The notes beneath the pieces were generated by a model, which ran no database searches, was not told the origin of the DNA, and was given only the letters and a program-made list of their open reading frames with translations. The position numbers were made by a program, and so were the translations under genes. Below are positions 11,770-63,686 of a stretch of 64,000 nt of DNA, piece after piece (positions within the stretch are counted from its first letter, which is position 1; each line of letters opens with the position of its first letter). The stretch is taken from NCBI GenBank assembly GCA_950097015.1, contig CATNEN010000014.1, positions 186,001 through 250,000 of the forward strand. The letters run 5' to 3'. Origin of the DNA: Macrostomum hystrix (taxonomy: Eukaryota; Animalia; Platyhelminthes).

Positions 11770-14700
11770 ATGCCTTCAGCTCCAATGCTTGGCGACCACC
11801 TTCTGCTGCCAGCGCAAACCTTCTCCGACTGGGGTCTTCGCATTCTGCAGCCCGTCCTGCTGCAGTCAAAGCACTGCTGCTCGGTGTTTCCTTGCCCAGG
11901 TGCCACCCAGCAGCTTCAGAAGACTGCCATAAGTTCCAGGATTTGCCTCGGGCATCTGCCGCTGACTACCTGCCAGCGGTTTTGTCTCGATGCCGACCCT
12001 GCCTCGCCTCCTGCAGAGCTGGTACTGCATGTCAACCCGGCCTGCCCGAACCCCATCGTTGCTGAGGTTGCAACAGTGAAATTGGAGTGCGAGGCGATGC
12101 CCGCCAACAGAGGACTACTGCTTAAGATTCTGAAGCACAGGCTACGTAAGTATACTTATTTAATCAGTGGTTTAGTTTTTTATATCGAAAATTTTTTTTT
12201 CTGATAGCACTAGGAGATAACTGCGCCAACAAAATGTGCCCATCTGCTGCTTCTTTTCTTTCTGGCACACCTCAGGCAACTGCTACGTGACAGAGGGTAG
12301 CGTAAATAGCTTTAATATTCTTGGCGTTGAAGTGGCCTTGCGCTTCTCCAACATCTCGCCGCCACCACCGGCAGTCATCGCTGCCGTTGCATCAGCCGAC
12401 TCTGAGCTGACCCTGTCGAACTCGCTCGCTGCACACTGTTCCATCAGCGACTCTCCGCAGCCCCAGCCATCAACTCCGGAGCTGTCGTCTGCCTCGTCAG
12501 AGACGCCAAAGCGAAACCGCAAAACGCCACGAACTGGTAGCGGTGCGCCCGCCGAAGCAACTCCAGGCACAGGCACCTGTGCTGGCGGCCTCGACCTGTC
12601 AGACTATCGCCAGTTCTCCGTATCGCTTCGGCTCGCTGTCAGCACGGTTGATTGTCACCAGCCATACCGAATAGTTGACGACACCAGACTTGTTTGGGAG
12701 GCTCCGGACTCAGAAGTCACATCGCAGCCGACTGGCAGCGAAGAGTTGCCGGAACTGTTCGGCCTGGATTTTCAGGAAGAGCAGCTCCGTGCTGCAGTTG
12801 CGCAGTTTATGTCGGAACTGTCGAGCCATGCCGGCTTTGCCTTCACCGGAGTTTTCCTTTGCGGGCCGCGTGGCTGCGGCAAGGCTAGCCTCGCAACCAG
12901 CGTCTGCCGTCGTCTCCACTGCCCGCTGCTTCGGCTTGACCGGCACCGCCTTCTAGGCCGCTACCTAGGCCAGGCCGAGTCCAACCTGAGCGCAACGCTT
13001 CAACAGGCAGCCGCTGGGTATGCCATGCTACTGGCAGTAGTGAGCTAATTGCAGCATATTTAGTTTTATGTACCTTATTTTATGCTAGGCAGACTTCTGC
13101 TGTTTTAGACTTCTAATCGATATTGCAGGGTGTTGGAACCAAAGGGTATGAGCTCCCTATATTTAGGCATGATCCTGCTTGTGCCGTTACGAATTCGAAA
13201 AACTTCGGTGGTCAGGGGTAGGATTTTCGGTTTTGGTTTGACGTCCTATCTCGCCCGTCTTGCCACCTAGCTCGTTGACCTTGAACCCATCTATACATGG
13301 AACATTAACTCCTCCTCGTGGTCAGGCGTGGAAAAAATTCTGTTTTGTTTTGAAGCTTGAGGTAATTTTGCAATTGACAAGCCTTTTGCCTACTTTACTG
13401 CAGCCGCGGCACTTATTGTTGCGTTGCTTGCAGCTCTGGCGCAGTTGCGCGCCGCCTGTCGAATTAGCCGGGTTTGTCTGGTGTCCTTTCTTTGGAGCTG
13501 TGCTGCTTCCAATGGCGTGCAGTCTGCTGTGAAGCCTCGCCATGAAGACTCCGCCATATCGCTGGACGATCTTTGAGCAGACTCGAGATCCACAGCAAGC
13601 TTGATCCTCTTGCAGGAATGGTCGGAATTATCCGGATACTGATTTCGGTGTCGCTTCTCTAAAACCGAATTTTCAGTGTGTTAAGGCAGATATGAGGTTC
13701 GCCCGAAAGTTGGCAAAGGATTCACCCTTAAGCTGGCCATGACATAAGAATTCAGATAGCACTACAACTTTCGAGTTGCCAACTTGACGGCTCTGAAGAA
13801 CGTTGCTTATTCAGAATGTCCTTCGAGTCTTGGTAGAACTGGTTGCTTGGAATTGGCTTTTGATAAATCGATCTTGTTGCAAATATAATAGTTTTATTCG
13901 CTCTACGTTTATTGCGAATACGAAGTAAGTTACAATTGAGCTCTGTAATCCGACCTCATGACTTTATCGTCATTGTGACAGATTAAGCCCTCGACAGATG
14001 CGAGACCTCGTCTTTTATTGTACATTCCAGTAGAAAGGTTTTAACTTCTAAGAGTTTGCTAAGCATTTCTTGCTCGCATTTAGAGAAAATGCTCCGCGGG
14101 CAAATCTCGTCTGGCAATTAGTGTACAGTCAATTGATTTGCAGTCAAATCTCTTGCGGGCTACGCATCTGCAGTAAAATATGATAAGATAGAATCACATT
14201 GTGCGCTAATAGAAAATTAAGTGCAGTATCGAATGCATCAATGCACCTAAACACATTTTCAGACGTAGCTCCTGCCTTCTCATCGAGGACATCGACGACC
14301 AGTTTGGCGAAGCTAAGGCCAACAGCGCAGGTGTGGACAGCCGCTTGAGGCAGGTTCTCGCGTCGGAGCTCGACCGGCTGAGCCACGGCAGCCGCCTACT
14401 GCTTTTGGCCACCGGCTCGGACCTGAAGAGCCTGGATGAGCGACTGCGCGGCCTATTCCAGCTGCACATTCCCGTGCCGCTGCCCACAGGTGAAGCTAAG
14501 GCCAGGGTGAGTTGCATGAACTAGTATTTTGTTCTGGGCTTTGTTGTGGCTGTCACTGAATATTTTACAACTTCCGAAATCAACAGCTTATGGAGCGACA
14601 GCTTAGCCGCCTGCCAGAGCAGCTTCGTCCCTCCGATCCAAACCTGGTGCGGCAGTTCGCTTCCAAAGTGCATGGCTACTCAGCCTCTGAGCTCGTCAGT

Positions 14701-18210: not shown

Positions 18211-20130
18211 TTTTCGCAGTAGCCCCTACTCGTATCAGAGGAGTGAGTCATATTGAGTTCAATCAGATTCAGTTATCATCAATTATTAAATTATTTTGCA
18301 ACCATGAAAAGTGCAATTTTGGAAGGCAAGCTTAGGCCCCGACCCGACGTTGATCTGCCTCGCCAGTGCTGACTCGTCAACAAACGTTCGCTGGGCGGCA
18401 CCAGGCTGCAGCGCAACTGCACCGTCATCTTCCCCGTGTAGCTGAAGCGCTGGTGCCATGGCTGCACTGAATTGTTGCAGTGAGCGATCCCGCCTCTTGG
18501 CTATGCCTTTGTTGTCCAGTCCTCAACGTCGCAGATTCAAGTTGTTCTTCATCTAGCAGCGACAGCGCCGTATTCGAGTTTTCTTGCACAAACTTCTTGG
18601 ATGCAGAAAATTCTTCGTCATGCCGATCAGCCACGGATGATTCCGATGATGAAATCCAACTCCGCGCGGGTTATACAAGTGTATTATCCAACTCGGGAAC
18701 CGGAAGGTTTTGTCAGTGAAAAGGAAATATGCTGTGCCATTACGATGGGTCAGTGCATGATTTGCCAGCGCCTTAATTGCAAATACTCCACTATAGACAC
18801 CGTGACGCGAATTTCTCCAATTTCACTTATCAAGCAAAAATACTAGGCGCAGCTCAACCACAGGACACCATCGCCTAGTCTGTCAACCAATCGGTCACCA
18901 CCCAACGCTTTTAGCATTAAGGCGCTGCCAAAATATATTCTAGTTAAATTCCCCCCAAATTGATTCAAAAACAGGCGGCAATATGGCTTGGTAGTAGCCG
19001 AGCGCAAAATGCTATTTTGAAATTATGAAATTATGTTACAATGTACATGCATATTTACGAGCTAGCTAGTAGATCAATGCAACGACGACGACGTTAAACT
19101 CTAAGAAACGAAAGCGGCTTTTGGCCAGAAAATAAACAGTCTACAGTCTTATCTGTAGATTTTACTGTAGTGGGCTACAACCGCAATATCCGAGGTTGAC
19201 CCCGTATTCATATTGTTAAACTTGCTGAAATTTTGTCTCGCATTACAAAAGTGAGGCACGAAAAGAATTATGAAAGTTTGGAAATATGTCATTTCACAAG
19301 AATAGTAGCAACAATGGTCTTGTGTTCGAGCGAGGAGAACTTTGGTCTTTATGTTCTACTTCCTTCATGTACAGTATGATCGGGCAGAATTCCATTGCAA
19401 CTTTCGAATTTAAAGATAAAAAAAATTTCTTACACTTGCAATTGTGCACCCATACTTTTGCATCTAGTCTTTTCGAACTATAGTTACGAGCAGCAGGAAT
19501 TTTTCATGCATATTTCTCGTCGAAAAAAAGAAACTTCATTTTTAGTGTGCTTTAGGCTTTAGTGGGTTTTAGGAAGTTTTAGTAAAATTCAAAAATATAA
19601 ATAATTTCTAAATTATAAATTTCTACATTTTTTCTACTTTTTTCTAAATTTTCTAAATTGCATATAGCAAATTTCTAAACTAAACGCAACCGCAATCAGC
19701 TACCAGTGTATTATCTGTAGAAGTTATGCGCATTTTTCAGTTGGTTATGAAAATTAAATCTGTTAATTGTCTAATATTTTCGCTCATCATATACAAACGT
19801 ATTGTATTATTGATCGACGCTAATAACCTTTCATAACTGCGGCACAACAATTTTATAGCAAATAAAACCACGCCCAAATAGCATATATAGAAATTCATAA
19901 ATAAATTCGTACATGTAATATGCATTTTGGTTTAGTATGCTTCAAATCTTAACTTTGAAATCTAAACAAGAGAAATAGCTCAGTGTTACTTAGTCAATTT
20001 TGTTTGTGCGGATATCATCACTTGAATGACAACTTGAACGTCATTTGCAAAGGCATTTTCAAGCCGGCCAATCACCACAAAACAATCGCGTTGTCAGCTA
20101 TGTTCAATGCCAATCAGAATCGTGGCATAA

Positions 20131-22675
20131 TTAATTTTCCGTCTTTGACGTGTCTCCGGCAGCAGCATCAGCAGCCTTTGATGCAGCGGATTTTGCCGCC
20201 TCGGTCGCGACGTCAGCCGCCCGCTTGCCGAACTTGGCAGTCAGTGCCGACTTCGCCTTTGTCTCTGCGTCCCCCAGGTTCTGTGCGAGGTCGTCACGAA
20301 GCTGGTCGGAGCGCCGGTCCAGCCGCATGGCGATGGAGGCCAGGTTGCCCAGGCTGGAGATTTCATCGCTGGCATTGGCTGCGGCCATGTCCGGCATCAC
20401 TTGGTCCAGCAGGTGGCTGTTCTCGTAGCACAGGTGGGAGATGTAGTACCTTTTGCGATTGGCAATTAAGTTTAATTGAGTTAGGGCTGTAAATTCTTAT
20501 TGTTTAAAAAAATTTATTTTATAGAATGAAAAAAAATGTTAGTAAACATTTTCACGCTTTTAGTAATATGAACCTAGGTGGTAAGGGAGCTACACCAATT
20601 CAGTTCCACATTAAGCCAATATTAGTGCCACAATAGATAGAAATCTCGATTCATCGAATCTTGTCGATGAATCGGACAAAATTCATCTGCGGATTTCGGC
20701 GTGGTGAAGCTAAAGCTATAGATGCTTGTCTCGTTTGTTGCGTGCAGAAATTAAGGCTGCAAGAATGATGTGCAGCTGAGAGAATCTTGAGCTGGCTCGA
20801 GATGCGTGTTTCCGACCGTAGTTAAGCCTGCATGCACTAGCTGGCTCATCCTCTCAGCCTGCACATATTTTTCCGCCTTCTTTCTGGGACAACCTCGTAT
20901 AAACTTCCTGAAGATCACTTTTTTGATAACTTCTTGACCGATTTTACCTTTTATTTCTACTCGTATGTGAGCGTGAAAAGTCAAAAGAAATGATTTTTTG
21001 CTTTATTCGAGTGTGTAATTCGATTCTGAGGTTCAACTAAGTTTTCTACCATACTTTTAAAAATAGTAGCGGTGCAAATATTGCCGAAAAATGTTATTTC
21101 ATTCTTGACTAAGAGCTAAAATTGATGCTTAAATGAGCTGAAGAAATTCATACCTGTCAGCGAGTCTGTGCGAGAAGTAATCCGAGCAGCCATCTTCCAT
21201 CTCAACGTACCCGGTGGCACCACCACTTCCGAGCAGCGGGAGGCCTTCGTCTGCAGAATCTCGCTTGGGCTGCACCACCAAGCCGAGAATTCTCTGAAAG
21301 TAGTGCGATCGGCACTCCTTGCCGCAGCCAATGAGACATCGCTTGGTGCGACACTGGCGGCAGCGGCAGCCGACCACGAAAGGGAAGTAGTAAAGCAACT
21401 GCCTGGCGGTAGCCAGGAGGCAGAAGGCCAGAAGGGACATGTTTGTAGACCAGCCGACCTCGTACAGACTGGCCTGCAGCAGTACGCAGCTAAAGCGGCT
21501 GTGTGCAGCGATACCGCGTGAGTAAGGTAGGAAGCAGGTGAACCGGTAGCGAATATCCTCGTGCCGGAATCCAGGAAAGAAACCATAGAAAGCCAGCCAC
21601 GCCGCAAGCACTGCCGCCCGCACCAGCTGGAAAGCGCAGTACTGACCTGTGTGCTTCGACTTGCAGTACCAACGCCGCAACCGCCGCTTGAGCGCCGCGT
21701 CGGTTAGTAAATCAGCTTTTGATGGCCTTCCCTGCTGCATCCTTCGATGTCGGCAAGTCTCCTCAGACTCACAGCCGTCGCCATCGCCACCCTCTGCTTC
21801 GTCAGCTAATAGCTTCTTAGATAGCTCCACCACGAACTGCACGTTTTCTCGAAGACACTCACCTGCCGTCTGACTCCAGATGTAATAGGGCAGATAGACT
21901 GTTCCTGCCTGCCTGTGTTTTGAGCATCAAGAGTTTTCACAACATTTCTGTTTGTTTTGCGGCCTTAGCTTATTACCTAAATTCGTTTTTTACTCGTATA
22001 AACAGCATGTTTTGAATAACAAAACATGCGCGAATTCATTTTACCTGGCCAGTAAAGGTAACGTTTCTAAAGACAAAAGTATTCGCAAAAGCACATTGCC
22101 TTTCCTGAAAGATGAACAAGAATGGCAAGTAGAACTGCAGCAGGTAGTGACGCAAGACTCCGTCAAAGCTGGCTGGAATGACTCCGTCCGGCAGGCCAGT
22201 TTGGTCAACGCCACGCGTATAGCAGTAGGACTCTGCGTAAGCTTTGTCCGCCACAGAGACCGTCGCTGCGATCGATGCCGTGCCATTTTCACTGTCTGCG
22301 CCTGCCTCCGTCGTGCAAGTCACCTTAGCTTCTGTAAAAGCAAAATCGAAGGAAAAGTGCAACGGATTAGTGGCCATTTAAGATCAGTACATATTACTTT
22401 CGACTCTGCATACTTCCTATATTACCTCTGTAAGCAACGCGTACATTGACATCGACTATTGGCAAAAAAATTATGAATCGCCATTGGCCCGTATCCTCTG
22501 AGCACTGTCACTTACGGGCTGCGAAGTTGGCCGCCAGAATCGCCACTGCCTGCACGATGACTGTCATGAAAGCAAGTCGGTTGATCAGCCTGTCTATGGG
22601 AAAACTCGCTTTCACGGCGTGTGGCTTGACGAACTGCTCGAGCGAGGACTGCAACGAATTGGCCAGGTTAGACAT
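20131..22675 (-). CDS. Innexin/pannexin-superfamily large-pore channel, pannexin-like. Exons 22675-22516, 22331 to about 22105, about 21908-21154, 20449-20131
   Basis: Spliced protein MSNLANSL...FPIDRLINRLAF(TM1)...AKVTC...AYAESYCY...LQFYLPFLFIFQ-AGTVYLPYYIW(TM2)...NVQFVVELSKK...YCAFQLVRAAVL(TM3)...RFTCF...FSCVL...(TM4)...[12 protein letters not shown]. It has four TMs and two Cys per extracellular loop, the innexin/pannexin topology. The intron 2 donor is non-canonical. Confidence 0.85.
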
Positions 22676-23276
22676 GATTGCTGACAGCGGCTACCCGATT
22701 AATTTTCTAGCCAAAGCCGCGAACCAGTCCACATCACTCAATTGAACTTCCCAGCATATTATAGACAGACAGTAAGAGCCGCAACAGCTGCACGTGCACG
22801 TGCTTCCAAATCCTGGCAACAGGTGCAGCTGAAATTTGGCTGCTCAGTGGAGGTTACGAGAGTCCTGAAGAGATCAGAGATTGTCTGTCGAGATCAAGTT
22901 TAGGCCATGGACGCCGTGAATCCTACGCAATCCTACCTGCATAGTTCCACTTTTCCCCACCGCTTTGACTGGCTAATCTCACATTGAGCTCGTCGGATTA
23001 GTGGAGGAAGACTAATCCCAGGGAATTATTTTAGAGTGCTCTGTCAGGTGCATTAAATGGATTCACCTCCTGCAGACTTAAAGAGTCCATGAGGTTTTAG
23101 CAGTGCTTGTACTATACACGCAGTTCGTAGTAAGCAGTTCTGGATTTAATACTCAACTGTCTGGCCGTCAGTTACTTCGGCGAGCTATCAAAAAGCCGTG
23201 CATGCTTCGCTGGTCAAAAATTAAGTAACTTGAAATAATCTTCAGAGAGCTTCAATAAAGTTAAGAAAGCAAAATA

Positions 23277-24018
23277 GTCTTCAGACTGCCGTTGCTTCAG
23301 ACAAGAGAACCATGGCCATGGTCTTCAGACTGCTGTTGCTTCAGACAAGAGAACCATGGCCATGGTCTTCAGACTGCCGTTGCTTCAGACAAGAGAACCA
23401 TGGCCATGGTCTTCAGACTGCCGTTGCTTCAGACAAGAGAACCCTGGCCATGGTCTTCAGACTGCCGTTGCTTCAGACAAGAGAACCATGGCCATGGTCT
23501 TCAGACTGCTGTTGCTTCAGACAAGAGAACCATGGCCATGGTCTTCAGACTGCTGTTGCTTCAGACAAGAGAACCATGGCCATGGTCTTCAGACTGCCGT
23601 TGCTTCAGACAAGAGAACCATGGCCATGGTCTTCAGACTGCTGTTGCTTCAGACAAGAGAACCATGGCCATGGTCTTCAGACTGCCGTTGCTTCAGACAA
23701 GAGAACCATGGCCATGGTCTTCAGACTGCTGTTGCTTCAGACAAGAGAACCATGGCCATGGTCTTCAGACTGCTGTTGCTTCAGACAAGAGAACCATGGC
23801 CATGGTCTTCAGACTGCTGTTGCTTCAGACAAGAGAACCATGGCCATGGTCTTCAGACTGCTGTTGCTTCAGACAAGAGAACCATGGCCATGGTCTTCAG
23901 ACTGCTGTTGCTTCAGACAAGAGAACCATGGCCATGGTCTTCAGACTGCTGTTGCTTCAGACAAGAGAACCATGGCCATAGTCTTCAGACTACCGTTGCT
24001 TCAGACAAGAGAACCATG
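23277..24018. repeat. Tandem array, 44-bp unit, about 17 copies
   Basis: CCATGGCCATGGTCTTCAGACTGCYGTTGCTTCAGACAAGAGAA. Each unit holds the 14-bp palindrome ACCATGGCCATGGT. Confidence 0.97.
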
Positions 24019-24599: not shown

Positions 24600-27500
24600 A
24601 TGCACTGGAGTTTTCTCATCTTTGCCTTTGTTTCCGCTGTCCTGACGGATGAACGAAAAGTTGTCCATATTCTCTGCATAGTTTCTGACGCTCCAGAGTT
24701 CAGAATGGACAGAGACTATTTGAATTTCAGCTTTAAGTACGTCAATGTCAACCTCAGCCACTTGTTCCCGACCTTCCAGATGCAGTACCAACTAATCAGC
24801 ACTGATGGTGTAAGTTTGATGACACTTTTTAGCAACATTAGAGGGCAAATAGGATTTTTTTAGCCCCAAACTCATACCAAGCTTGAAATTGTGACAAATT
24901 ATAATATATTTTATAATATAGTATCGCGCCATTATGCAGTATTTTTGTTTTGAATAAGTGTGTCCGCTCCGTTACCGCTTGCTTTTATACTTCTAACTGT
25001 TGACAACTTCTCGGACAAAGTAGAGGCCGCCAATTTTTTTAGGCAAAGCCTCATTTTTGTTAAAATGAAGAGAAAAGCCACTACATTTTTTGTTTTTAAA
25101 CATTTAAAACCCTTTTTTCAGTCGGTGCTTCTCTGTCATCGATTTTTAATCAATATATCATTGATCGTTTTGATACTATGAGTATTTTAGAAGGTTCTTT
25201 TAAACTTACCATTCTGATTCACTTTTTGTCCCTTAAAGAAAACGTGTGTTTTTTTTAAACTTTGGATGCTTCGACTACTTTATTTTTTCATTTGTTCAGA
25301 CTCCAACGTTGCTTTGTGCTTTTACCGTGGCGAGACGAATAAAAAAGTTAGTCTTGTATAGAGTTTGATCGCTTTTGAAAATATTTTCTTGTTTATTCTC
25401 CCATTTAGAGCTCATTCATTTTGGTGCCCAGAACCCTAATTGACCTGCCATGACTCAGATGGACAGAAGAAGCCTGAATCCATATGAACACATCAGAAGT
25501 TGGACAGGAATTTTATTTCATTGGCGCTTGCAACTTGCAGCAAAAGTTGGGCAGCGCGGCCAAGGCCCTCATCGACGGCTACCTGCAGCCGCCAAACAAG
25601 GCGTTGGTGCTGGGCGCGGCCTTCTCCCACCAATCGCAGATCATAGCCGACATAGGCCAATACTACTACCTGCCTCAGGTAAGGCGTCAATAAGGTGCTT
25701 TACTGGCTAGGAGCCTCCTAGAAGCTATAGAAGTGCAGTAAAATGTTATCGCACACATTGTATCGCGCGTCCTTTTGCATAGGCTGTTTGCAGAAGCCAC
25801 TTTGAAGCTCAGAATTTGAAGGGCATGAAGTCTTAGGCTGAGGCTGAGCTACGAGCGCATGTTGCATAGGCTGTTTGCAGAAGCCACTTTGAAGCTCAGA
25901 ATTTGAAGGGCATGAAGTCTTAGGCTGAGGCTGAGCTACGAGCGCATGTTGCATAGACTGTTTGCAGAAGCCACTTTGAAGCTCAGAATTTGAAGGGCAT
26001 GAAGTCTTAGGCTGAGGCTGAGCTACGAGCGCATGTTGCATAGACTGTTTGCAGAAGCCACTTTGAAGCTCAGAATTTGAAGGGCATGTAGTCTTAGGCT
26101 GAGGCTGAGCTACGAGCGCATGTTGCATAGACTGTTTGCAGAAGCCACTTTGAAGCTCAGAATTTGAAGGGCATGAAGTCTTAGGCTGAGGCTGAGCTAC
26201 GAGCGCATGTTGCATAGACTGTTTGCAGAAGCCACTTTGAAGCTCAGAATTTGAAGGGCATGAAGTCTTAGGCTGAGGCTGAGCTACGAGCGCATGTTGC
26301 ATAGGCTGTTTGCAGAAGCCACTTTGAAGCTCAGAATTTGAAGGGCATGAAGTCTTAGGCTGAGGCTGAGCTACGAGCGCATGTTGCATAGACTGTTTGC
26401 AGAAGCCACTTTGAAGCTCAGAATTTGAAGGGCATGAAGTCTTAGGCTGAGGCTGAGCTACGAGCGCATGTTGCATAGGCTGTTTGCAGAAGCCACTTTG
26501 AAGCTCAGAATTTGAAGGGCATGAAGTCTTAGGCTGAGGCTGAGCTACGAGCGCATGTTGCATAGACTGTTTGCAGAAGCCACTTTGAAGCTCAGAATTT
26601 GAAGGGCATGAAGTCTTAGGCTGAGGCTGAGCTACGAGTGCATGTTGCATAGGCTGTTTGCAGAAGCCACTTTGAAGCTCAGAATTTGAAGGGCATGAAG
26701 TCTTAGGCTGAGGCTGAGCTACGAGCGCATGTTGCATAGACTGTTTGCAGAAGCCACTTTGAAGCTCAGAATTTGAAGGGCATGAAGTCTTAGGCTGAGG
26801 CTGAGCTACGAGCGCATGTTGCATAGACTGTTTGCAGAAGCCACTTTGAAGCTCAGAATTTGAAGGGCATGAAGTCTTAGGCTGAGGCTGAGCTACGAGC
26901 GCATGTTGCATAGGCTGTTTGCAGAAGCCACTTTGAAGCTCAGAATTTGAAGGGCATGAAGTCTTAGGCTTGTAATAGCTCAAGAGTCAAGCTGTGTGAG
27001 GTGCGAAGAAAAAGGTGAGCCCTCCAAGTAGGGCGAGACAGTATTTATATATTTGCCTCAACGTGCAACCGATACGATCAACGTGCGCGTGGGGGGCATG
27101 TACATAGTGAGCGAGAGTTAGTGATGCATGTACATATTAGATTGACCGGCAAAGCGATACGTGAGTGCTATTAGACTACGGCATGACAGTCCTCCTCAAG
27201 TGGATGAAAAATTATAGGGAATAAAATGAAAGAAGTAGTAGCAGGCAACAATATAATTGTTTTTAGAACAGTCCTTGTAACTTTAGTCTGTCAATCAAGC
27301 AATTCAGCTTCTGCGCAGGTCGGGTTCTCTGTAGTTCCTCTCTGGGTCCTTCGCCCGCCGGGGGTGGAGCCGGGCTGCGACTGGCTCCGCGAGCTCAGGG
27401 GCGTCGGGAGATTCGAGCGGCTGCTGATCGGACTGCTCAGGCTGCCCGGGCAGCCGCTTGACCTGCGTGGCGTGCCTGCGGCAGACGACGTCGTCGCGCT

Positions 27501-30500
27501 GCATGAGCAGAGAGTCGCCTTGCACCTCGGCCACGGTCCACGGCGCCGACTCGTAGAAGGCGTCGGTCTTTTGCCGGGACTGCTGGCGCCTGAGGACGCG
27601 GTCGCCGGCGCGAATGCCGTGGTCGGCGGCTCTGAAGCGTCGGTCGGCGTGCCGCTTCATAGCCTCCTTGGCCTGTCTGTCGCTGTCGGCAATGGCCGCT
27701 CGAGTCGCGTCGACGGGCTGCGAGTGTCGGAGACTCGGGATCACATCGTTGATCTGCCTGCCAAATAGCAGACTGGCCGGCGCGACGCCCGTGGAGCAGT
27801 GCGGAGTGCGTCTGTACGCTGCCAGGTACTCATCCAGGGCCAGTGTCCAGTCCCTGCCTTCGACGCTCGCTGCGCGGATAGCCTTGTTCAGCCCTTGATT
27901 GCACCGCTCCGTTGCGCCGTTGGCCTGAGGGTAGAGAGGCGTGATCCGATGGTGCCGTGCGCCCTGATCCATCAGGAAGCTGGTGAACTCGGCCGATGCG
28001 AAGGGTGGGCCATTGTCTGTGGTCACCTTTGTCGGCTGCCCGAAGATGCTAAACCACCGGCGTAGCACGTTGATGACGGCGGAGGCGGTGGTGCTGGCCA
28101 TGACCTCCACGAGCGGGAACCTGGAGAAGTGGTCCGTACAGACGAGCAGCGACTTGCCGTTTATCGGTCCGAGGAAGTCGAGCCCCAGCTCGAGCCAGGG
28201 GCCCTCCGGCAGTTCGGTCGGCTTTAGCGGCGTGGCTTTCGGTGAGGTCTCGCTGGTGCAGGTCAGGCAGCTGGTGCAGGCTGCTACGTGCGCCTCCACG
28301 GATGCTCGCATGCCTGGCCACCAGACCTTCGCTTGCAAGCGGTCGAGCGTTTTTTTGACGCCCTGGTGTCCCTGGTGGGCCAGCTGCATGCACCGGTATC
28401 GCAGAGTCGTCGGCATGTACAGCTGACTGCCGCGCAGCAGCAGGCCGTTCAGCTCGGATAGTTCGTGGGATACGCCATGGAGTCCCTGCAGACACGTGTC
28501 ACTCTTGTCCCATTGGTGGCCGCGGATGGCGTGTAGCGCTGCTTGTACCGTGCCGTCTCGTTCGGAGGCCGCCTTGATTGTGCCCAGGCTGATGGACACC
28601 GGAGTGGCAGCTTGGACTGCCGTGGCCACGTAGATCGCGTCCGCCTGCTCGCCGACGTTGTTTGGTGGCATTGGCAGCGGCTGGCGGCTCAGGACGTCAG
28701 ACGGGTTGCCGGCGCCGGGCTGGTACACGACCCGAAAGACAAGGTCTTGCAGTCGCAGCGCCATGCGCTCAATGCGGGGTGGCGGCCGAGACCCCGTGCT
28801 GAACAGGGATATCAGCGGCTTGTGGTCGGTGATGACCTTGAAACTGCCACCCCCGCTGAGGTAGTGGTAGAACTTCAGGCCGCCGTACTTCACCGCGAGG
28901 GCCTCTCGCTCCGTCTGGGAGTAGCGCTGCTCGGTCGGGCTGAGGCTGCGGCTCGCGTATGCCACCGGCCGCGTCGATCCGTCTGGCTGGACTTGGGCAA
29001 GGATGGCGCCGACACCCGTGGGGCTGGCGTCCACGATCAGCTGAGTCTGCAGCTCACTATTGAAGAATGCCAGCGCGTGGCTGCTGGCGATCGTCTGTTT
29101 GATGTCGTTGAATGCGGCCTCTTGCTTTTCGCCCCACGTCCACTCGGCGGCCTGCCTTGTCAGCTCGCGGAGTGGCCGGGCCCTGTCAGACAGGTTGCTG
29201 ATGAAGCGCGCCACGAAGGTGACGAGGCCGAGGAAGGAGCGCACCTCGGTTGCGTTGGTCGGCCGCTTGAAGTTGTTGATGGCCGCTACTTTCTCGGCGC
29301 TTGGGTGAATGCCGCATGCAGAGAGCCGCATGGCGAGAAAGTCGACCTCTGGTCGAGCGAAGCGGCACTTCTTGGGGTTCAATGTGATGTTGCTAGCCTT
29401 CAACCGGGCCAGGCAGTCTCGCAGGCGCTGGTTGTGCTCTTCAATGTTTTTCGCGTACACCAGGATGTCGTCGTGCACCCAGCGGACGCCGGGGAGGCCA
29501 CTCAGGACGGAGGTCATCACCCGCTGGAGGATCTCGGAGGCGGATGTGAAGCCCATGCAGAGCCGGCGCAGCCGCAGGAGCCCGATGGGTGAGGAGAACG
29601 TTAGCAGGTCTCTAGACTCCTCGGCGACTTCAATTTGGTGGAAGGCTTTGGCGACGTCCAGCTCCGAGAAATACGTCGCGCCCGCCATCTCGTCCGTCAC
29701 CTCTTCGAATATGGGTATAGGCTGCTTCTCTGGGATGACGTACTTGTTCACCTCGCGGAGGTCCTGGGTGATGCGAACCTCGCCCTGCTCGGCCTTTGGA
29801 ACTGCGACCATCCTGGAGCACCAGGCTGTTGGACCACGCACTCGTTCGACGATTCCCAGTGCCAGTTGATCTTCCAGCTCGTTGATTACAGCATTCCTTA
29901 GGTGAACGGGCACTCGGGATGGCGGCTGGCAGACTGGAGTGGCATCCGGCCTGAGCCTGATAGTGACGCTGACTCCCTTCACGCATCCGATGCCTTGAAA
30001 GCAGTCGCTGAATTCCGCCAGGATTGTCTGAAGTTGCAGCTGCTTGGGCAGGTGCTGGTCCTCACTGCTGGCCGGCTTAGCTAGGCTGGCCACCACCGCA
30101 GAGTTCGTGCTGACTTCAGGTCCGACTCTCAGCATGCCGAGCTTTGTGCTGGACGATCTTCCGAGAATCGGTGTGCAGTTGCTGCTGATGACGATGAAAT
30201 TGGCCTGCAATTCGCGGTGGTTCGCTCTGACAGTGAGCGTTGTTTGGCCGGCTGTCTTCGGTGGCTCGCTGGCACCAAGCGCAAAGACTGTGGTGCTGGA
30301 CGGCGAAAGCGGCGTGCCGGGCCGGCAGATTCTGTGGAACGTCGCCATGTCCAACACGTTGCAGCTCGCTCCGCTGTCGATCAGTGTGCGGACCGGACTG
30401 CCGTTGATTCTGATGACGAACTTGGCGCTGTCGTCCTTGCCGCTGAGCGTGCAGAACACCTCGTTGGGTGGTTGGTCGGCTGACTGGTCCTGCTCGGGCT

Positions 30501-33500
30501 GCAGTGAGTTAATCTTCGAGCGGCTGCTGAGGCAGGCCTTGGCCAGATGGTTGGCCTTGCCGCAGCTGCTGCATCGCTTGCCTTGCGCCCTGCTGCAGCT
30601 CTTGTGGCCCAGCTCGCCGCACCGGATGCACTTAGCAAATTGCTGCGACTCACGCGAAGGTTCCGGCAGCGGGTGGCGCTGGCGGCGCAGTTGCGCCACT
30701 TCCTCAGAGGCTGCCGCTGTCCTGGTCATGATGGCCGCCTGCTTCTCTGCTGCCTCGTGCGTCCTGGCCAGCTGGAGAGTGTCCGACAGGCTGATGTTGG
30801 GGATATTCAGCAGGCGCTTCCTCAGTGACTCGCTGCGACAGCTGGCCACGATTTGGTCCCTGATGAGCGACTGGCGGAGACCCTCGAACTTGCAGGCTTC
30901 CGAGGCGCTCCACAGTCTGCTGTGCCAAGCGTCTATGGATTCGCCTTCTTCCTGGAGACAGTGGCGAAACTGGTATCGAATGAAGACGACGTTATCGCGG
31001 CCTTGGAAGTGCGTGCTGAACTGTGCGATCAGCTGGTCGACCGTGGGCTCGGCTGCGGGCTCGCCTTCTTGTTGCTGCGACTGGGTGGCGATCTCGTTGT
31101 ACAGGTCGCTCACTTCTTTGCCTGCCGTATACAGAAGGATCTGGCGTTTCTGCGTCTCATCTTTGATGCCGGTTGCCGCCAGGTACCGCAGAAGGTTTGT
31201 CGACCACTCCTGCCAGCGCTTGCTTACAGAGTGAGGGTCGTCTCTGATGCTAAAGTGGGCTGGTGGAGGCAGTTGTAGGAAGGCCATGGTTCGGCCTTGC
31301 GACGCCAATGTAATAGCTCAAGAGTCAAGCTGTGTGAGGTGCGAAGAAAAAGGTGAGCCCTCCAAGTAGGGCGAGACAGTATTTATATATTTGCCTCAAC
31401 GTGCAACCGATACGATCAACGTGCGCGTGGGGGGCATGTACATAGTGAGCGAGAGTTAGTGATGCATGTACATATTAGATTGACCGGCAAAGCGATACGT
31501 GAGTGCTATTAGACTACGGCATGACAAGGCTGAGGCTGAGCTACGAGCGCATGTTGCATAGGCTGTTTGCAGAAGCCACTTTGAAGCTCAGAATTTGAAG
31601 GGCATGAAGTCTTAGGCTGAGGCTGAGCTACGAGCGCATGTTGCATAGACTGTTTGCAGAAGCCACTTTGAAGCTCAGAATTTGAAGGGCATGAAGTCTT
31701 AGGCTGAGGCTGAGCTACGAGCGCATGTTGCATAGGCTGTTTGCAGAAGCCACTTTGAAGCTCAGAATTTGAAGGGCATGAAGTCTTAGGCTGAGGCTGA
31801 GCTACGAGCGCATGTTGCATAGACTGTTTGCAGAAGCCACTTTGAAGCTCAGAATTTGAAGGGCATGAAGTCTTAGGCTGAGGCTGAGCTACGAGCGCAT
31901 GTTGCATAGGCTGCGCACACCTAAACTAATTACTATGGCTTTCTGTTGCCTTTTTAAGTTCTTTGTTCCAAACCGGTCTTAAAGGATCACGTTGAGTCCT
32001 TAAGCTACCAGCAAGCAAAACAGAGGTATATATTAACTTTGCTGAGTAGCACAGTAGCACAGTAGCACAGTGTGACCTTAAAATCGAAATATTCTAAAAG
32101 AGCTCTAGAAAACTCCAAACTCAAGTATATAATTTACCGCCAAAAAGGATACGATAGTGAAGGAGCAACAACCCCTCTAGTCTGTAATGTGATCTAAATT
32201 CAACTTCTCGAGATCTACTTTACCCCCCTCCCAAATCTTTTTTTCTGCTCACTGACTTGATTGTTCAGCGAGTAAACGAGCAGAGCAGATCTGATTCGAG
32301 CAGAAATTCTATGACTGAGAAGTCTCTAATTGCGGAAGCGACCTTTGAGTTATGCACGATTAACTATAAACCTGGGTAACTGACTCTCTGTCCTCAGATC
32401 GGCTTCTCAAACACATCCCCGCTGCTGAGCGACAAGTCCGCTTACCCCTTCTACATTCGCATGCCGGTCACGGGCAGCCTGTTTGTGGAGCCAACTGTGC
32501 GACTGCTCAACAGGTTCGGCTGGCGCAATGTCGGTCTCATCACAATGGACTTTGAGGTTGTGTACCCGGTAAGCAAAGCCTACATTCAATCAGAATTCTG
32601 TCAGTCAAATACCAGAGCACTCTATAAAATTAAGGACTTGATGGCGGAGCAAGTGCCATTGTTGCCAGTTAATTTAGGCAAGACTCAACTTAAGGCATGG
32701 AACTTTGCACTCGTAGTTTCATGTACTTGATTTGTTCGATGTCACATGACTTGTCCTGACAACTAATGGAGAAATAGAATAGCTAATGCATGCAGCAACT
32801 AACCCCTAACCCCTAATCGCTACTTCGACAGGGCATTCTACATGGCTGACTTCAATGTTTTCACAGGACAACATGAAAAATGCATATACTTCTTAGAGAC
32901 AATATTTGGACTAGTTCAGATTAGCATGGGGAATGGGAAGTTAATGAAATAAGGAAAGCCAGCTCTAACTCAAAACACATTGACGAACTGAAGGTGGCTC
33001 TATTGCTGGAGGCAGCTCTGGTGGAGAAGAACATCACCTACCAGAAGATGATCTACAGCGGTGATGTCACGGAAGCCATCCTCAACCTGCTGGTACGGAT
33101 GCAGACATTGATTAAAGCTGAACCATTCAGGACCCATCAGTCATTCAGGCACACCTCACCTTGCAGAAGAGCGATATCCGAATCTTTGTGGTTGTTCGAG
33201 CTGGAAATCAGGAGTATCCCGACAAGCGATTTGAATGCGTAGTAAGATTCTGCTTGGACTTCTGTGCTATAAATCTAATGGGCACTTTTGTCTTTAAAAG
33301 CAACATATTTTTTGTGAAAAACATTTTGACATACCTTGCATTTGTTAATAAGAAACACCAAATAATTTATTGAAACGATTTCGTTTCATTCGCTAAAATA
33401 CCAAGTTTCCTTTCCCAATGTAACCATCCTCTTAACAGCTAAAGCAGCTGGGTGTCTATGGGCCGAAGTATTTCTGGGTTCAGGTAGGCCTGCCATTCAC

Positions 33501-60168: not shown

Positions 60169-62239
60169 CCATAGTCCAGATCATGTAGTGCATGCCAGAA
60201 TTTTCTGGAGTGCATTTGTTTTCAGCTGGCATGTATGGCGTGCATTGGTATATATTTTAAGGGTTGGCGTACACTTTGGGGTGCAAGGTGTGCATGGCCA
60301 TGGTGTAGTGTGAAATCGTACATTGCATTTAAAAAGAGATCAAATATGTGTTTTATGCATCTGAATGTACAATTACAAATATCAACTAATTATTTAATGG
60401 ACTTAGCATGACTAAAACAAAATTGTCTGTATCTGTAAAAACATTTTTAAGTTTTGTAAATTGGACTATAAATATAGCATTTTGTGTCCGACTTAAGTTT
60501 ATGGGCATTTCACTTGATCCACAGTGGCAGAATTCCACACTCAATGGCAACTGCTTTCCCAGTCTATGGCTCAAACGGGTGGCTGGCAGGCGATTGACAT
60601 AATCTTTGGGGCATGAACTTAGTCCATTTTTGCTCTCTAGTAGACTGAAAGCTGCGCTTCGCGCTCTAGCCTAAAGAGCAAAGGCAACAGTATGAGCTCG
60701 GAAGACGAAGGCAGCAACGCTAGGTATGAAACTGCCCCTGATGAGCAGGGTGACGGCCCACAACCTTGGACGTAGTCAATGATGAGCAATGAGAAACACA
60801 GCCTTGTCATAGACGCACTGGACAGAGGTGAGCGGCCGGTCGATATCGCGCGATGGATGAAGGTTAGCATCAAGACAGTCATGTCAATTAAAAGGCAGTA
60901 CGTAGTCACTGGACATCGCAATCGTCTCCCTCATGGCAGTGGCAGAGAACCGAAGCTCGGAGCAGTCCATGTTCAGTACGTGGTGGACAGTCGAAAATCC
61001 ACTTCTGACACTGGCGGAGATGAGGAACCAGCTGCAGGATCGGTTTAATCTACAAGTAAGCGAATCCACCATCAGTAGGGCGCTGGACAAGCAGCTGATC
61101 ACGCTGAAAAGTCTGGGGCGAGAAGCCAATGTTCCAGCAGCGCGCAACTTTCCAGAGAACGTGGCTCGGAGGCAAGAATTTGCTCACTGGTTGATCGGCA
61201 TTCCTCCCGAGCAGCACTTGCTATTCGTCGACGAGACGGGTTTCAACATGTGGACACGCCGATCCCAAGGACACAGTAGACGAGGCCAGCGAGTTCGGTG
61301 CGTGGTTGTTACACAGCGCGGAGCTCAACTGAACATCGTGCAGGCCATCTCTCCAAGCCTTGGCCTCGTGCATCACAAGATGGTTTCTGAGACGATGACG
61401 GCGGCCAGGTTTCAGACATTCGTCAAGGAGCTGATGCATGCTGTCAATAATCGCGGTGATGTGGGCGACGCTGAACGGTTTTGCATTGTGATGGACGGCG
61501 CTCGATTTCACAATGGAGTCACACTGCCGGAGCAGTTTGGAGCCAACTGGAGCATTAAGGTCCTGCCGCCATATTCGCCGTTTCTGAACCCCGTCGAGGA
61601 GGCGCACTCATGCGTGAAGGCGGCAATCAAGCGCGCACTGGCGCAGCATGAGGTGCAGTGTGAGCTGGACAGCCCGCCCCCACAGACGCCGCTGTACCAG
61701 TGGCGAATTCTGGTCATGCAAAGGATTGCTGAGGAGGCGACAGTGGAGGTCACGGCTGCAAAGTGCGGCGGATGGTACCGTCACTCACTGCGCCACCTTC
61801 CAGCCTGCATTGCCGGCCAGCCTATTTTGTGACCTTCAGTCGCTGAGTTCGATGAAGTTTTCCCGCTTGTATTTAAATTTTGTTCATTATTGCCGCCTGT
61901 GTTCCCGTTGCTGAACCTTTCTTGCCTACGTTCCCGATTCTTTTCTCGTTTGCATTCATTTTTGGTAAGCCTCGTGGCATCACATCAATAAATCACTTGG
62001 TCCTTGTCGCAACGCTGCCCACTAGGGCCTGCTTAAAAGCTTTCGGTCTACTAGAGAGCAAAAATGGACTAAGTTCATGCCCCGAAGATTAAGTCAATCG
62101 CCTGCCAGCCACCCGTTTGAGCCATAGACTGGGAAAGCAGTTGCCCTTGAGTGCAATTTGAAAAACTCAGCATCCTTGGCATGCAAACAATTTTTTACAA
62201 TTTTTTTCTGGCATGCAGCCAACATGATCTGGACTATGG
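60169..62239. mobile_element. Outer MITE (about 450 bp before being interrupted) with about 31-bp TIRs
   Basis: CCATAGTCCAGATCATGTAGTGCATGCCAGAA (60169 onward) versus TTCTGGCATGCAGCCAACATGATCTGGACTATGG (ending 62239). Confidence 0.75.
60538..62153 (+). mobile_element. IS630/Tc1-superfamily transposon with 116-bp TIRs; transposase about 60779-61832, DD33E, one frameshift near 60985
   Basis: TIRs 60538-60653 and 62038-62153 (4 mismatches seen). HTH DIARWMKVSIKTV; catalytic FVDETGF, IVMDGARFH, LPPYSPFLNPVEE, with 33 residues between the second D and E by my count. CA dinucleotide on both flanks. Confidence 0.92.
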
Positions 62240-62241
62240 TA

Positions 62242-63686
62242 CACTCAGCAACATTGAAAAGTTTCCACCCTCGCGCAAGTTGTATATTTAGAGTTTCAAA
62301 ACTGGTTTTTGTCGCCAGACTTGTGCCATAGACGATTGATGATTTCGTCAACACGCACTTGGGCCATAGAATTCAAAAACTTGGGTCATAGACGCCAGAC
62401 AAGTCGAAGGAAACAGTCACATGGAGCAGACAGCAGCATCTTACAGGAGTCTAAAATCCACGTTCGCAACCGAACGCAATGGTTCGCCAAATGACCGACC
62501 TGGAACGAGCGCGCGCCATTGGCATGCTGGACGCTGGGATGTCCATCCGAGCTGTTGCTCGCCAAATTGGGCGGTCACACAGCAATCCGCAAACTGCAGA
62601 TCAAGTGCAGAGAAACGGGCAGCGTGGCGCACGCCACGCGCGGCCTGCGGCTCAATATGCGCAGTACAACTAGGAGGGCGGACCGGCGATTGCTGCGAAT
62701 GGTAAAGGGAAGCCCCACATTGCCAGCCACCCTGCTACGGCTGATGTGGGCTGAAAGAAGCAGGCGAGGGAATGTCCTGAGCGCCCAAACCATCCGACGA
62801 CGATTGCGGGAGTCGGGGCTGCGATCCCGTAAGATGCGCAAACGGTCACGCCTGACCCCAACCCATGTGGCCAGCCGGGAACAATGGGCAATGCAAAGGG
62901 TCCACTGGAGGCAGCAGCAGTGGCGGCGAGTGATTTTCACAGATGAGAGCCGCTTTCGATTGTTCCGTGCCGACGGCCGCATTCGCGTGTGGCGCCAGCC
63001 GCGCCAGGAGATGCTGCCGCAGCACGTGCAAAACTCTGAGAGCCAGTCAGCTTCTATTCACGTGTGGGCAGGCATCACAATGCACGCGAAGACGGAGCTC
63101 GTGTTCCTGGATGCGACTGTGACTGCCGAGTCGTACGCCAACCTTCTACAGACGCGCCTGCTGCCCTTCATTGATGCTTCATGTGGTGGCGTGGGGAACT
63201 GCGTCCTCCAAGACGACAACGCCCCACCGCATCGCGCAGCCGCTGTGGCGCATCTGAAGGAGCTGCTGCACCTGCGAACCTTGCGCTGGCCGTCCCGATC
63301 ACCGGACATGAATCCCATAGAGCACGTTTGGGATTACCTGAAGCGCTCGATTCGGCGCGACAATCCGCCGCAAAATGTTGCCCAACTGCGCGAATCACTG
63401 TCTACTGCATGGCAACAACTACCGCAAGATTTTCTGCGACGCCTGGTTCTGGGGATGCCCCGGAGAGTGAGCGCTCTGCTGCACTCACGTGGCTGCTATA
63501 CGCGTTACTGACCCTGTTCTGGGCGAGTTGTCACCCATGCTCGCGTACTTTGTTTCTTTGCTGTTCCTTTGCTTCGGTCGATTCCGGATTATATATTTGT
63601 CTATGGCTCAAACCACGAATATCTCCACAGACCAAAACGTTGCCCCTTCGCGCGCTAGGGTGGAAACTTTTCAATGTGGCTGAGTG
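62242..63686 (+). mobile_element. Tc1-family transposon (DD34E), 1445 bp; transposase 62479-63511 with one frameshift near 62580
   Basis: TA TSD (62240-41, 63687-88). TIR CACTCAGCMACATTGAAAAGTTTCCACCCT. MVRQMTDLERARAIGMLDAGMSIRAVARQIG; VIFTDESRF, QDDNAPPH, WPSRSPDMNPIEHVW, GCYTRY. Confidence 0.95.

Follow-up and report, generated by a model that had tools for sequence, protein, structure and literature searches.

Introduction

To which branch of the large-pore channels does a flatworm gene belong when its product has the topology of an innexin and lacks the innexin signature YYQW? The question is raised by a four-exon gene on the minus strand at 20131-22675 of a 64-kb stretch of Macrostomum hystrix DNA (contig CATNEN010000014.1, positions 186,001 to 250,000), and "the window" below always means this whole stretch. 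An earlier note, made from the letters of the window alone, had called the product pannexin-like rather than classical innexin-like and its host an apparent non-chordate; the host is indeed a Macrostomum flatworm. In the usual view, innexins belong to the non-chordates, while chordates kept only the pannexins, which are innexin orthologues made non-junctional by glycosylation. We find that, judged by sequence, the lineage of this gene is clearly nearer to the vertebrate pannexins than it is to the canonical YYQW innexins. On balance we think it probable that the gene encodes a large-pore channel subunit of the pannexin/innexin fold, from a divergent pannexin-like lineage that has more in common with vertebrate pannexins than with canonical innexins. 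We read this lineage as undescribed and as something other than the pannexin orthologue itself; our literature search found no paper describing such a lineage, or such a gene in flatworms.

Results and Discussion

The gene starts with an ATG at 22675 and ends with a stop codon at 20131-20133 (minus strand), and its four open pieces join into a single reading frame. It is a real four-exon gene, all three splices being seen in RNA contigs (Logan, runs X5-X7). These contigs match the window with zero mismatches apart from the three stretches that they skip, which shows that they are RNA of the same organism. The transcript extends at least from 19900 to 22720, and the spliced product is 486 amino acids long (53 + 1 + 75 + 251 + 1 + 105). 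The parts of the gene, with transmembrane (TM) segments and untranslated regions (UTRs), are as follows.

To at least 22720, minus strand: 5' UTR; RNA contigs end at 22704-22720
22516-22675, minus strand: coding exon 1; N-terminus, IDRL motif and TM1 (about 22517-22576); joint 22331/22516
22332-22515, minus strand: intron 1; GT..AG, phase 1, five codons ahead of the first loop-1 cysteine
22105-22331, minus strand: exon 2; extracellular loop 1 with two cysteines, and the first half of TM2 (HYLLQFYLPFLFIFQ)
22279-22287, minus strand: N-G-T sequon in loop 1, flanked by its two cysteines
21909-22104, minus strand: intron 2; non-canonical, GA..AG as read from the RNA joint
21154-21908, minus strand: exon 3; in its first part the TM2 end (LPYYIW), the cytoplasmic loop and TM3 (about 21570-21641), in its second part loop 2 with two cysteines (about 21471-21569), TM4 (about 21369-21470) and tail
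About 21312-21368, minus strand: cysteine-rich stretch in exon 3, right after TM4
20450-21153, minus strand: intron 3; GT..AG, phase 2, with 704 letters skipped and the cut at +3 (RNA joint)
20131-20449, minus strand: exon 4 and stop codon; post-TM4 motif (20419-20448) and a tail rich in Ala, Lys and Asp, predicted to be helical
To at least 19900, minus strand: 3' UTR, from RNA contigs

The encoded protein contains four TM helices and a pair of cysteines per outer loop, with an I-D-R-L motif ahead of TM1. TM2 reads HYLLQFYLPF at the place where innexins have YYQW or YYHW, and the YY-x-W position of innexins aligns to L-Q-F-Y (alignment A2); the earlier note was right that YYQW is absent. Exon 3 opens with the last part of TM2, which reads LPYYIW, a motif found at the end of TM2 in pannexins and innexins too. 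Loop 2 carries its two cysteines in the pattern F-T-C...F-S-C. Directly after TM4, six cysteines fall inside 19 residues (21312-21368, minus strand), a stretch that is kept in M. lignano and has no counterpart in the alignments of the lancelet and metagenome relatives introduced below; it is a probable lipid-anchoring, palmitoylation cluster. The motif at 20419-20448, preceded by D-R-, is common to the lancelet and metagenome relatives.

Word-index protein searches, including one with the mixed alignment A2, returned M. lignano proteins only as close database relatives. These are P0001 (A0A1I8J165), P0002, which is 55% identical to P0001, and P0019 (PAA56329.1), a full-length protein; at least two M. 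lignano genes belong to the lineage. In UniProt the M. lignano homologues bear the automatic name "Innexin", and NCBI lists them as "hypothetical protein", which leaves the earlier description of the lineage as unannotated half right. The loop-1 sequon had also been pointed out earlier, and it is kept in M. lignano as N-G-S (P0019) and N-S-S (P0002). Aligned with M. lignano locus L006, the window matches in exons alone, at 77-84% DNA identity, and the four exons summed give a ratio of non-synonymous to synonymous substitution (dN/dS) of 0.076 at a dS of 1.26. The channel gene is under strong purifying selection. An AAA ATPase gene (exon at 12236-13045, plus strand) lies downstream of the channel gene and convergent with it in both the window and the M. 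lignano genome, which amounts to conserved synteny, and the window gene corresponds to Mlig034354 as an old counterpart under constraint. Within the 64-kb window there is no second copy of the channel gene and no canonical innexin.

Family placement

The window protein was searched exon by exon, and residues 19-497 of M. lignano P0019 served as the full-length stand-in for searches and folding. Against Pfam Innexin (PF00876), P0001 scores 18.3 bits, below the gathering score of 25 bits, and this is its sole Pfam match; P0002 does not match that family. The weak PDB matches of P0001 and P0019 are pannexins in every case. Pfam searches of the window exons and P0001 gave neither a leucine-rich repeat domain nor PF12534, and the tail is low-complexity and predicted to be helical.

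Profiles were more informative. With a profile of the Macrostomum sequences alone (A5), human PANX1 is matched along residues 75-307 (about 230 residues; E 1e-5), and INX-6, LRRC8, PANX2 and PANX3 give no match up to an E of 10. The joint profile of Macrostomum with the lancelet and metagenome relatives (A4) reaches PANX2 at 3e-19, PANX1 at 5e-17, PANX3 at 1.5e-9, INX-6 at 1.5e-4 and LRRC8A at 9e-3. For comparison, 37 non-redundant full-length open reading frames (ORFs) were extracted from JGI metagenome contigs that encode an exact YYQWVPF. A control profile built from 21 of the 37 reaches INX-6 at 7e-73 (249 bits) and PANX1 at about 1e-8, so that INX-6 is readily picked up by genuine innexins. 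None of the 37 canonical innexins exceeds 14.5 bits against the Macrostomum profile (median near 4), and in the opposite direction the Macrostomum proteins reach 10-17 bits against the profile of the 37 innexins. With hhalign, Macrostomum aligns to its relatives at E 3e-18 over 213 columns, versus E 4e-7 over 32 columns for the innexins. The profile searches proposed in the earlier note therefore lean to pannexin, and sequence comparison supports its view of the protein as pannexin-like rather than classical innexin-like. Its pairings of short segments with PANX1 fared less evenly. Two of the four are reproduced in HMMER alignments (AYAESYC with AFVDSYC, and IWSQTAGE...ELSKK with FWRFAAAP...EELDK), and the N-terminal pairing of IDRLINRLA lies outside every HMMER alignment to solved PANX1 chains.

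Structure comparison places the protein in the superfamily. An AlphaFold2 monomer model of P0019:19-497, of low confidence (predicted local distance difference test, pLDDT, 50; predicted template modelling score 0.41; tail pLDDT below 50), has TM1 at 34-53, TM2 from 107, TM3 at 217-241, strands at 253-274 and TM4 at 275-310. The helices and loop strands expected of the fold are present in this low-confidence model, as are the four TM segments, the outer-loop beta-hairpin with helix and the two cysteines per loop that characterize pannexins and innexins. The top 50 Foldseek matches of the model are all pannexin or LRRC8 chains, in the ESM Atlas the neighbouring clusters are those of chordate pannexins and LRRC8, and the VIA Z-scores are 11.3 for PANX2, 10.5 for PANX1, 10.2 for LRRC8A and 10.0 for INX-6. 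If the prediction is right, fold and conserved cysteines together speak for a large-pore channel in the form of a ring. The structural check against PANX1, LRRC8A and INX-6 that had been suggested thus gives the superfamily fold and no ranking within it (Z 10.0-11.3).

The likenesses to the known families can be set out side by side. PANX2 and PANX3 carry a sequon between the cysteines of loop 1. Vertebrate PANX1-3 share with the window protein the four TM helices, the two cysteines per outer loop, a TM2 run F/Y-x-P...Y-L-P...W with a conserved cytoplasmic helix, the F-V-C...C pattern of loop 2 and an acidic motif after TM4 that ends in E-N. They differ in that aligned identity is only about 12-17%, and in the window protein loop 1 is longer, TM4 is followed by a cysteine-rich stretch, and the tail is of another kind, lacking an evident caspase-site plug. 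Canonical innexins (PF00876; C. elegans INX-6) resemble it in fold, topology, the two cysteines per loop, the conserved proline of TM2 and the D-R-L motif before TM1; unlike them, it lacks YYQW, scores under the Pfam gathering threshold and has no sequence match to INX-6. The TM domain of LRRC8 has the same fold, and its Atlas and Foldseek matches are about level with those of the pannexins, but the window protein has no leucine-rich repeat domain and the lineage profile reaches LRRC8A only at E 9e-3; lacking that domain, the protein shows no direct tie to LRRC8.

Relatives in lancelets and metagenomes

An exhaustive HMMER search of 1.84 billion representatives (cut-off E 1e-3) returned six matches in total, one of them the Macrostomum family itself. 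Among the others are P0004 (E 9e-9), Branchiostoma floridae LOC118406090 (P0005/P0011, XP_035661843.1; E 5e-5), P0006/P0015 and P0007/P0017; no true pannexin passed the cut-off. The Macrostomum profile scores P0004 at 51 bits, P0015 at 44, the lancelet protein at 35.5 and P0017 at 33.5, and the identity of these relatives to Macrostomum is 21-26%. The sources of P0004, P0015 and P0017 are animal-like metagenome contigs, from ERZ26695794 (ctg496982), ERZ25072724 (ctg140517) and SRR10189779. Rfam gave no match on these contigs, and a literature search for their accessions was likewise negative. On its own, P0004 finds PANX1-3 at about 1e-6 and the lancelet protein (P0011) finds pannexins at 5e-4, each with no match to INX-6.

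The relatives have more in common than overall similarity. All carry a loop-1 sequon at about the same place, aligning with that of the window protein, and they share the TM2 run Q-A...P...W, the loop-2 pattern F-V/L-C...C and, after TM4, N/D-D-x-x-L-I-x-x-x-C/S-x-E-N. A phase-1 intron precedes the first loop-1 cysteine, by five codons in the window gene and by six in lancelet LOC118406090. In P0004 the only possible reading of the putative intron is phase 1, five codons before the cysteine; in P0015 (five codons) and P0017 (eight codons) phase 1 is the likely reading of a putative intron at this place. The lancelet gene (3001-9749 of L007, CM022903.1) has two coding exons and, unlike the window gene, four cysteines in loop 1 along with the sequon. 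P0004, P0015 and P0017 differ from the window gene in having no further introns.

Several observations concern the contigs and gene models behind these matches. Pannexin-like genes lie on metagenome contigs L001, L008 and L002-L005 (some HiFi, 0.4-1.2 Mb, 15-40x coverage), each as a single ORF besides the putative intron before loop 1. The ORF call of P0017 read through a TGA, and its N-terminus is a gene-caller artefact. An SH2 exon next to one metagenome relative is about 30% identical to vertebrate proteins, a weak likeness. A nematode match, P0003 (Heterodera trifolii KAL3114031.1), carries the same half-innexin four times, fused to guanylate-kinase pieces; the gene model is probably an artefact of assembly or annotation, and we rejected it as a relative, its score being inflated by a short TM2 stretch that this chimeric model contains four times.

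A survey of the superfamily reports exactly one family member in lancelets, for B. floridae a plainly PANX-like sequence of 521 amino acids (Ce_Bfl_01); M. lignano was outside the species sampled (eLife 2022; PMC8769644). We considered whether our lancelet match is this known lancelet pannexin and rejected the idea, LOC118406090 being different from the Ce_Bfl_01 sequence of the survey. By its sequence, LOC118406090 adds to the lancelet a second member of the pannexin/innexin superfamily, so far uncharacterised. The presence of both this gene and a separate PANX-like gene in one animal points to a paralogous lineage rather than to pannexin orthology, which we regard as unlikely because the lancelet holds both kinds. 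The earlier suggestion of a protostome lineage needs correction as well, since the nearest relatives, all uncharacterised, are a lancelet protein and the metagenome proteins rather than pannexins proper, and the lineage is therefore not confined to protostomes.

Phylogeny

A tree was computed from 44 rows and 380 columns under LG+C20+F+G4, with three Macrostomum rows, the four relatives and the 37 innexins. Macrostomum and the four relatives are split from all 37 innexins with support of 100/100, and Macrostomum joins the lancelet protein with support of 90/77. In a tree without the relatives, Macrostomum attaches to the deepest and longest inner innexin branch and falls in neither main innexin group. 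The members of the lineage are accordingly united by mutual similarity from TM2 to TM4, by shared motifs, by the phase-1 intron and by the tree split, the last with the caveat of long branches.

Weighing the explanations

Several points weigh against a pannexin-like lineage of channels. Taken one by one, the window exons match nothing in Pfam or the PDB, and only profiles give significant matches. The control innexins were selected for an exact YYQWVPF and are taxonomically unassigned, and the tree comprises the Macrostomum rows, the relatives and these innexins, without vertebrate pannexins, the true lancelet pannexin (Bf_124577) or identified flatworm innexins. Long branches meet at the lineage, as the tree tool warns, and the composition of P0019 is odd; long-branch attraction could explain some of this grouping. 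Ranking pannexin against innexin by structure had to be dropped, with a model of pLDDT 50 and Z-scores tied within about 1. The weak GA donor of intron 2 leaves about 30% of transcripts unspliced, and these would end in a stop codon. Finally, the loop-1 sequon, to which the earlier note had drawn attention, is not diagnostic, such loop sequons being widespread in non-chordate innexins, some of which form junctions (PMC8769644).

The most serious competitor is an ordinary flatworm innexin that has evolved at high speed in Macrostomum and that resembles the pannexins, the lancelet protein and the metagenome proteins through long branches or compositional convergence. The automatic UniProt name of the M. 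lignano homologues, the Innexin family as the only Pfam match, the warnings of the tree tool about branch lengths and P0019, and the attachment of Macrostomum alone to the longest inner innexin branch, as expected of a stray long branch, are all in keeping with this. It has more difficulty with a similarity to P0004 that extends over 213 columns (E 3e-18), versus 32 columns for innexins, with the specific motifs that recur among the relatives in TM2, in loop 2 (F-V-C...C) and beyond TM4, with the phase-1 intron that they have in common, and with a match to PANX1 over 230 residues where INX-6 is unmatched; nor does strong purifying selection fit erratic evolution. We judge a fast innexin to be unlikely, though it deserves more weight than any other single alternative. 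Less probable still is the earlier note's proposal in its strict sense, in which the gene is a direct orthologue of chordate pannexins, so that a pannexin proper was present in the bilaterian ancestor and survives in Macrostomum. PANX1 is the sole solved family that the Macrostomum profile matches, the Atlas neighbours are chordate pannexins and the sequon is located in loop 1, as such descent would have it. Yet lancelet LOC118406090 and the metagenome proteins passed the cut-off of the exhaustive search where true pannexins did not, and the lancelet retains a separate, clearly PANX-like gene, which indicates paralogy.

Within the pannexin-like lineage that we favour, the subunits would assemble into a ring, of seven or eight by analogy, permeable to ions and to small metabolites, for instance ATP. 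The N- and C-termini would be cytoplasmic, and the cysteines of each outer loop could form a disulfide. The conserved loop-1 sequon is probably glycosylated, and glycosylation would hinder head-to-head docking, as it does in pannexins. By this analogy an outward-opening, non-junctional channel is more likely than one that couples cells.

A bolder proposal is that these genes form a third ancient branch of the superfamily, closer to pannexins than to innexins, which predates the protostome-deuterostome split and is present in Macrostomum, lancelets and further animals; we put this forward tentatively, at slightly less than an even chance. If it holds, pannexin-type, probably glycosylated, non-junctional large-pore channels would not be a chordate novelty, the separation of pannexin-type from innexin-type channels would move back to early bilaterians, and the published count of a single member for lancelets would be incomplete. 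Such a branch would also provide new outgroups for the origins of pannexins and LRRC8, and M. lignano, which regenerates and is amenable to transgenesis, would allow canonical innexins and a pannexin-like channel to be compared in one animal.

The non-canonical intron

Intron 2 has no GT..AG, GC..AG or AT..AC reading inside the four-letter ambiguity of its RNA joint, and GA..AG is the sole reading with a normal acceptor. The donor is CAG|GAAAGG in the window versus CAG|GTAAAG in M. lignano locus L006. A gene model with a canonical GT donor at 22044, which would add 20 residues to TM2, was rejected, as no RNA contig uses 22044. The depth of the junction contigs is 27.8/16.7/13.3, versus 12.3/11.9/7.3 for contigs that retain the intron, so that about 70% of contig depth is spliced and about 30% retained. 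The two depths sum to that of the flanking exons. In transcripts that retain the intron, the frame would stop after 22 codons.

This raises the possibility that the window holds a decaying copy, in which loss of the GT donor causes retention and an early stop, with the spliced RNA coming from a near-identical copy whose donor is intact. The GA donor here against GT in M. lignano and the retention in about 30% of contig depth are what such a copy would give, and Macrostomum genomes contain many recent duplicates. On the other hand, spliced and retained depth together equal the depth of the flanking exons, the exon contigs show zero variant letters, all four exons are open with dN/dS at 0.08, and GA donors are functional in rare known cases. 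We consider decay very improbable. If the spliced RNA stems from the GA allele, and not from a second copy with GT, the intron offers a natural example of a donor that lost its T and is seemingly still spliced.

Other features of the window

About 550 bases upstream of the 5' end of the channel gene lies a tandem array of a 44-base unit (23277-24018; 16.9 copies, 98% identity), which gives long spurious ORFs in three frames. Mobile elements are also present. An intact Ty3/gypsy-type pol ORF of 1334 amino acids (27307-31308, minus strand), with protease, reverse transcriptase, RNase H and integrase, sits within a block of high G+C content (0.56-0.63). The plus strand has two ORFs for Tc1/mariner-type transposases (DDE_3), at 60933-61829 and 62519-63508, the second of which also matches HTH_Tnp_Tc3_2.

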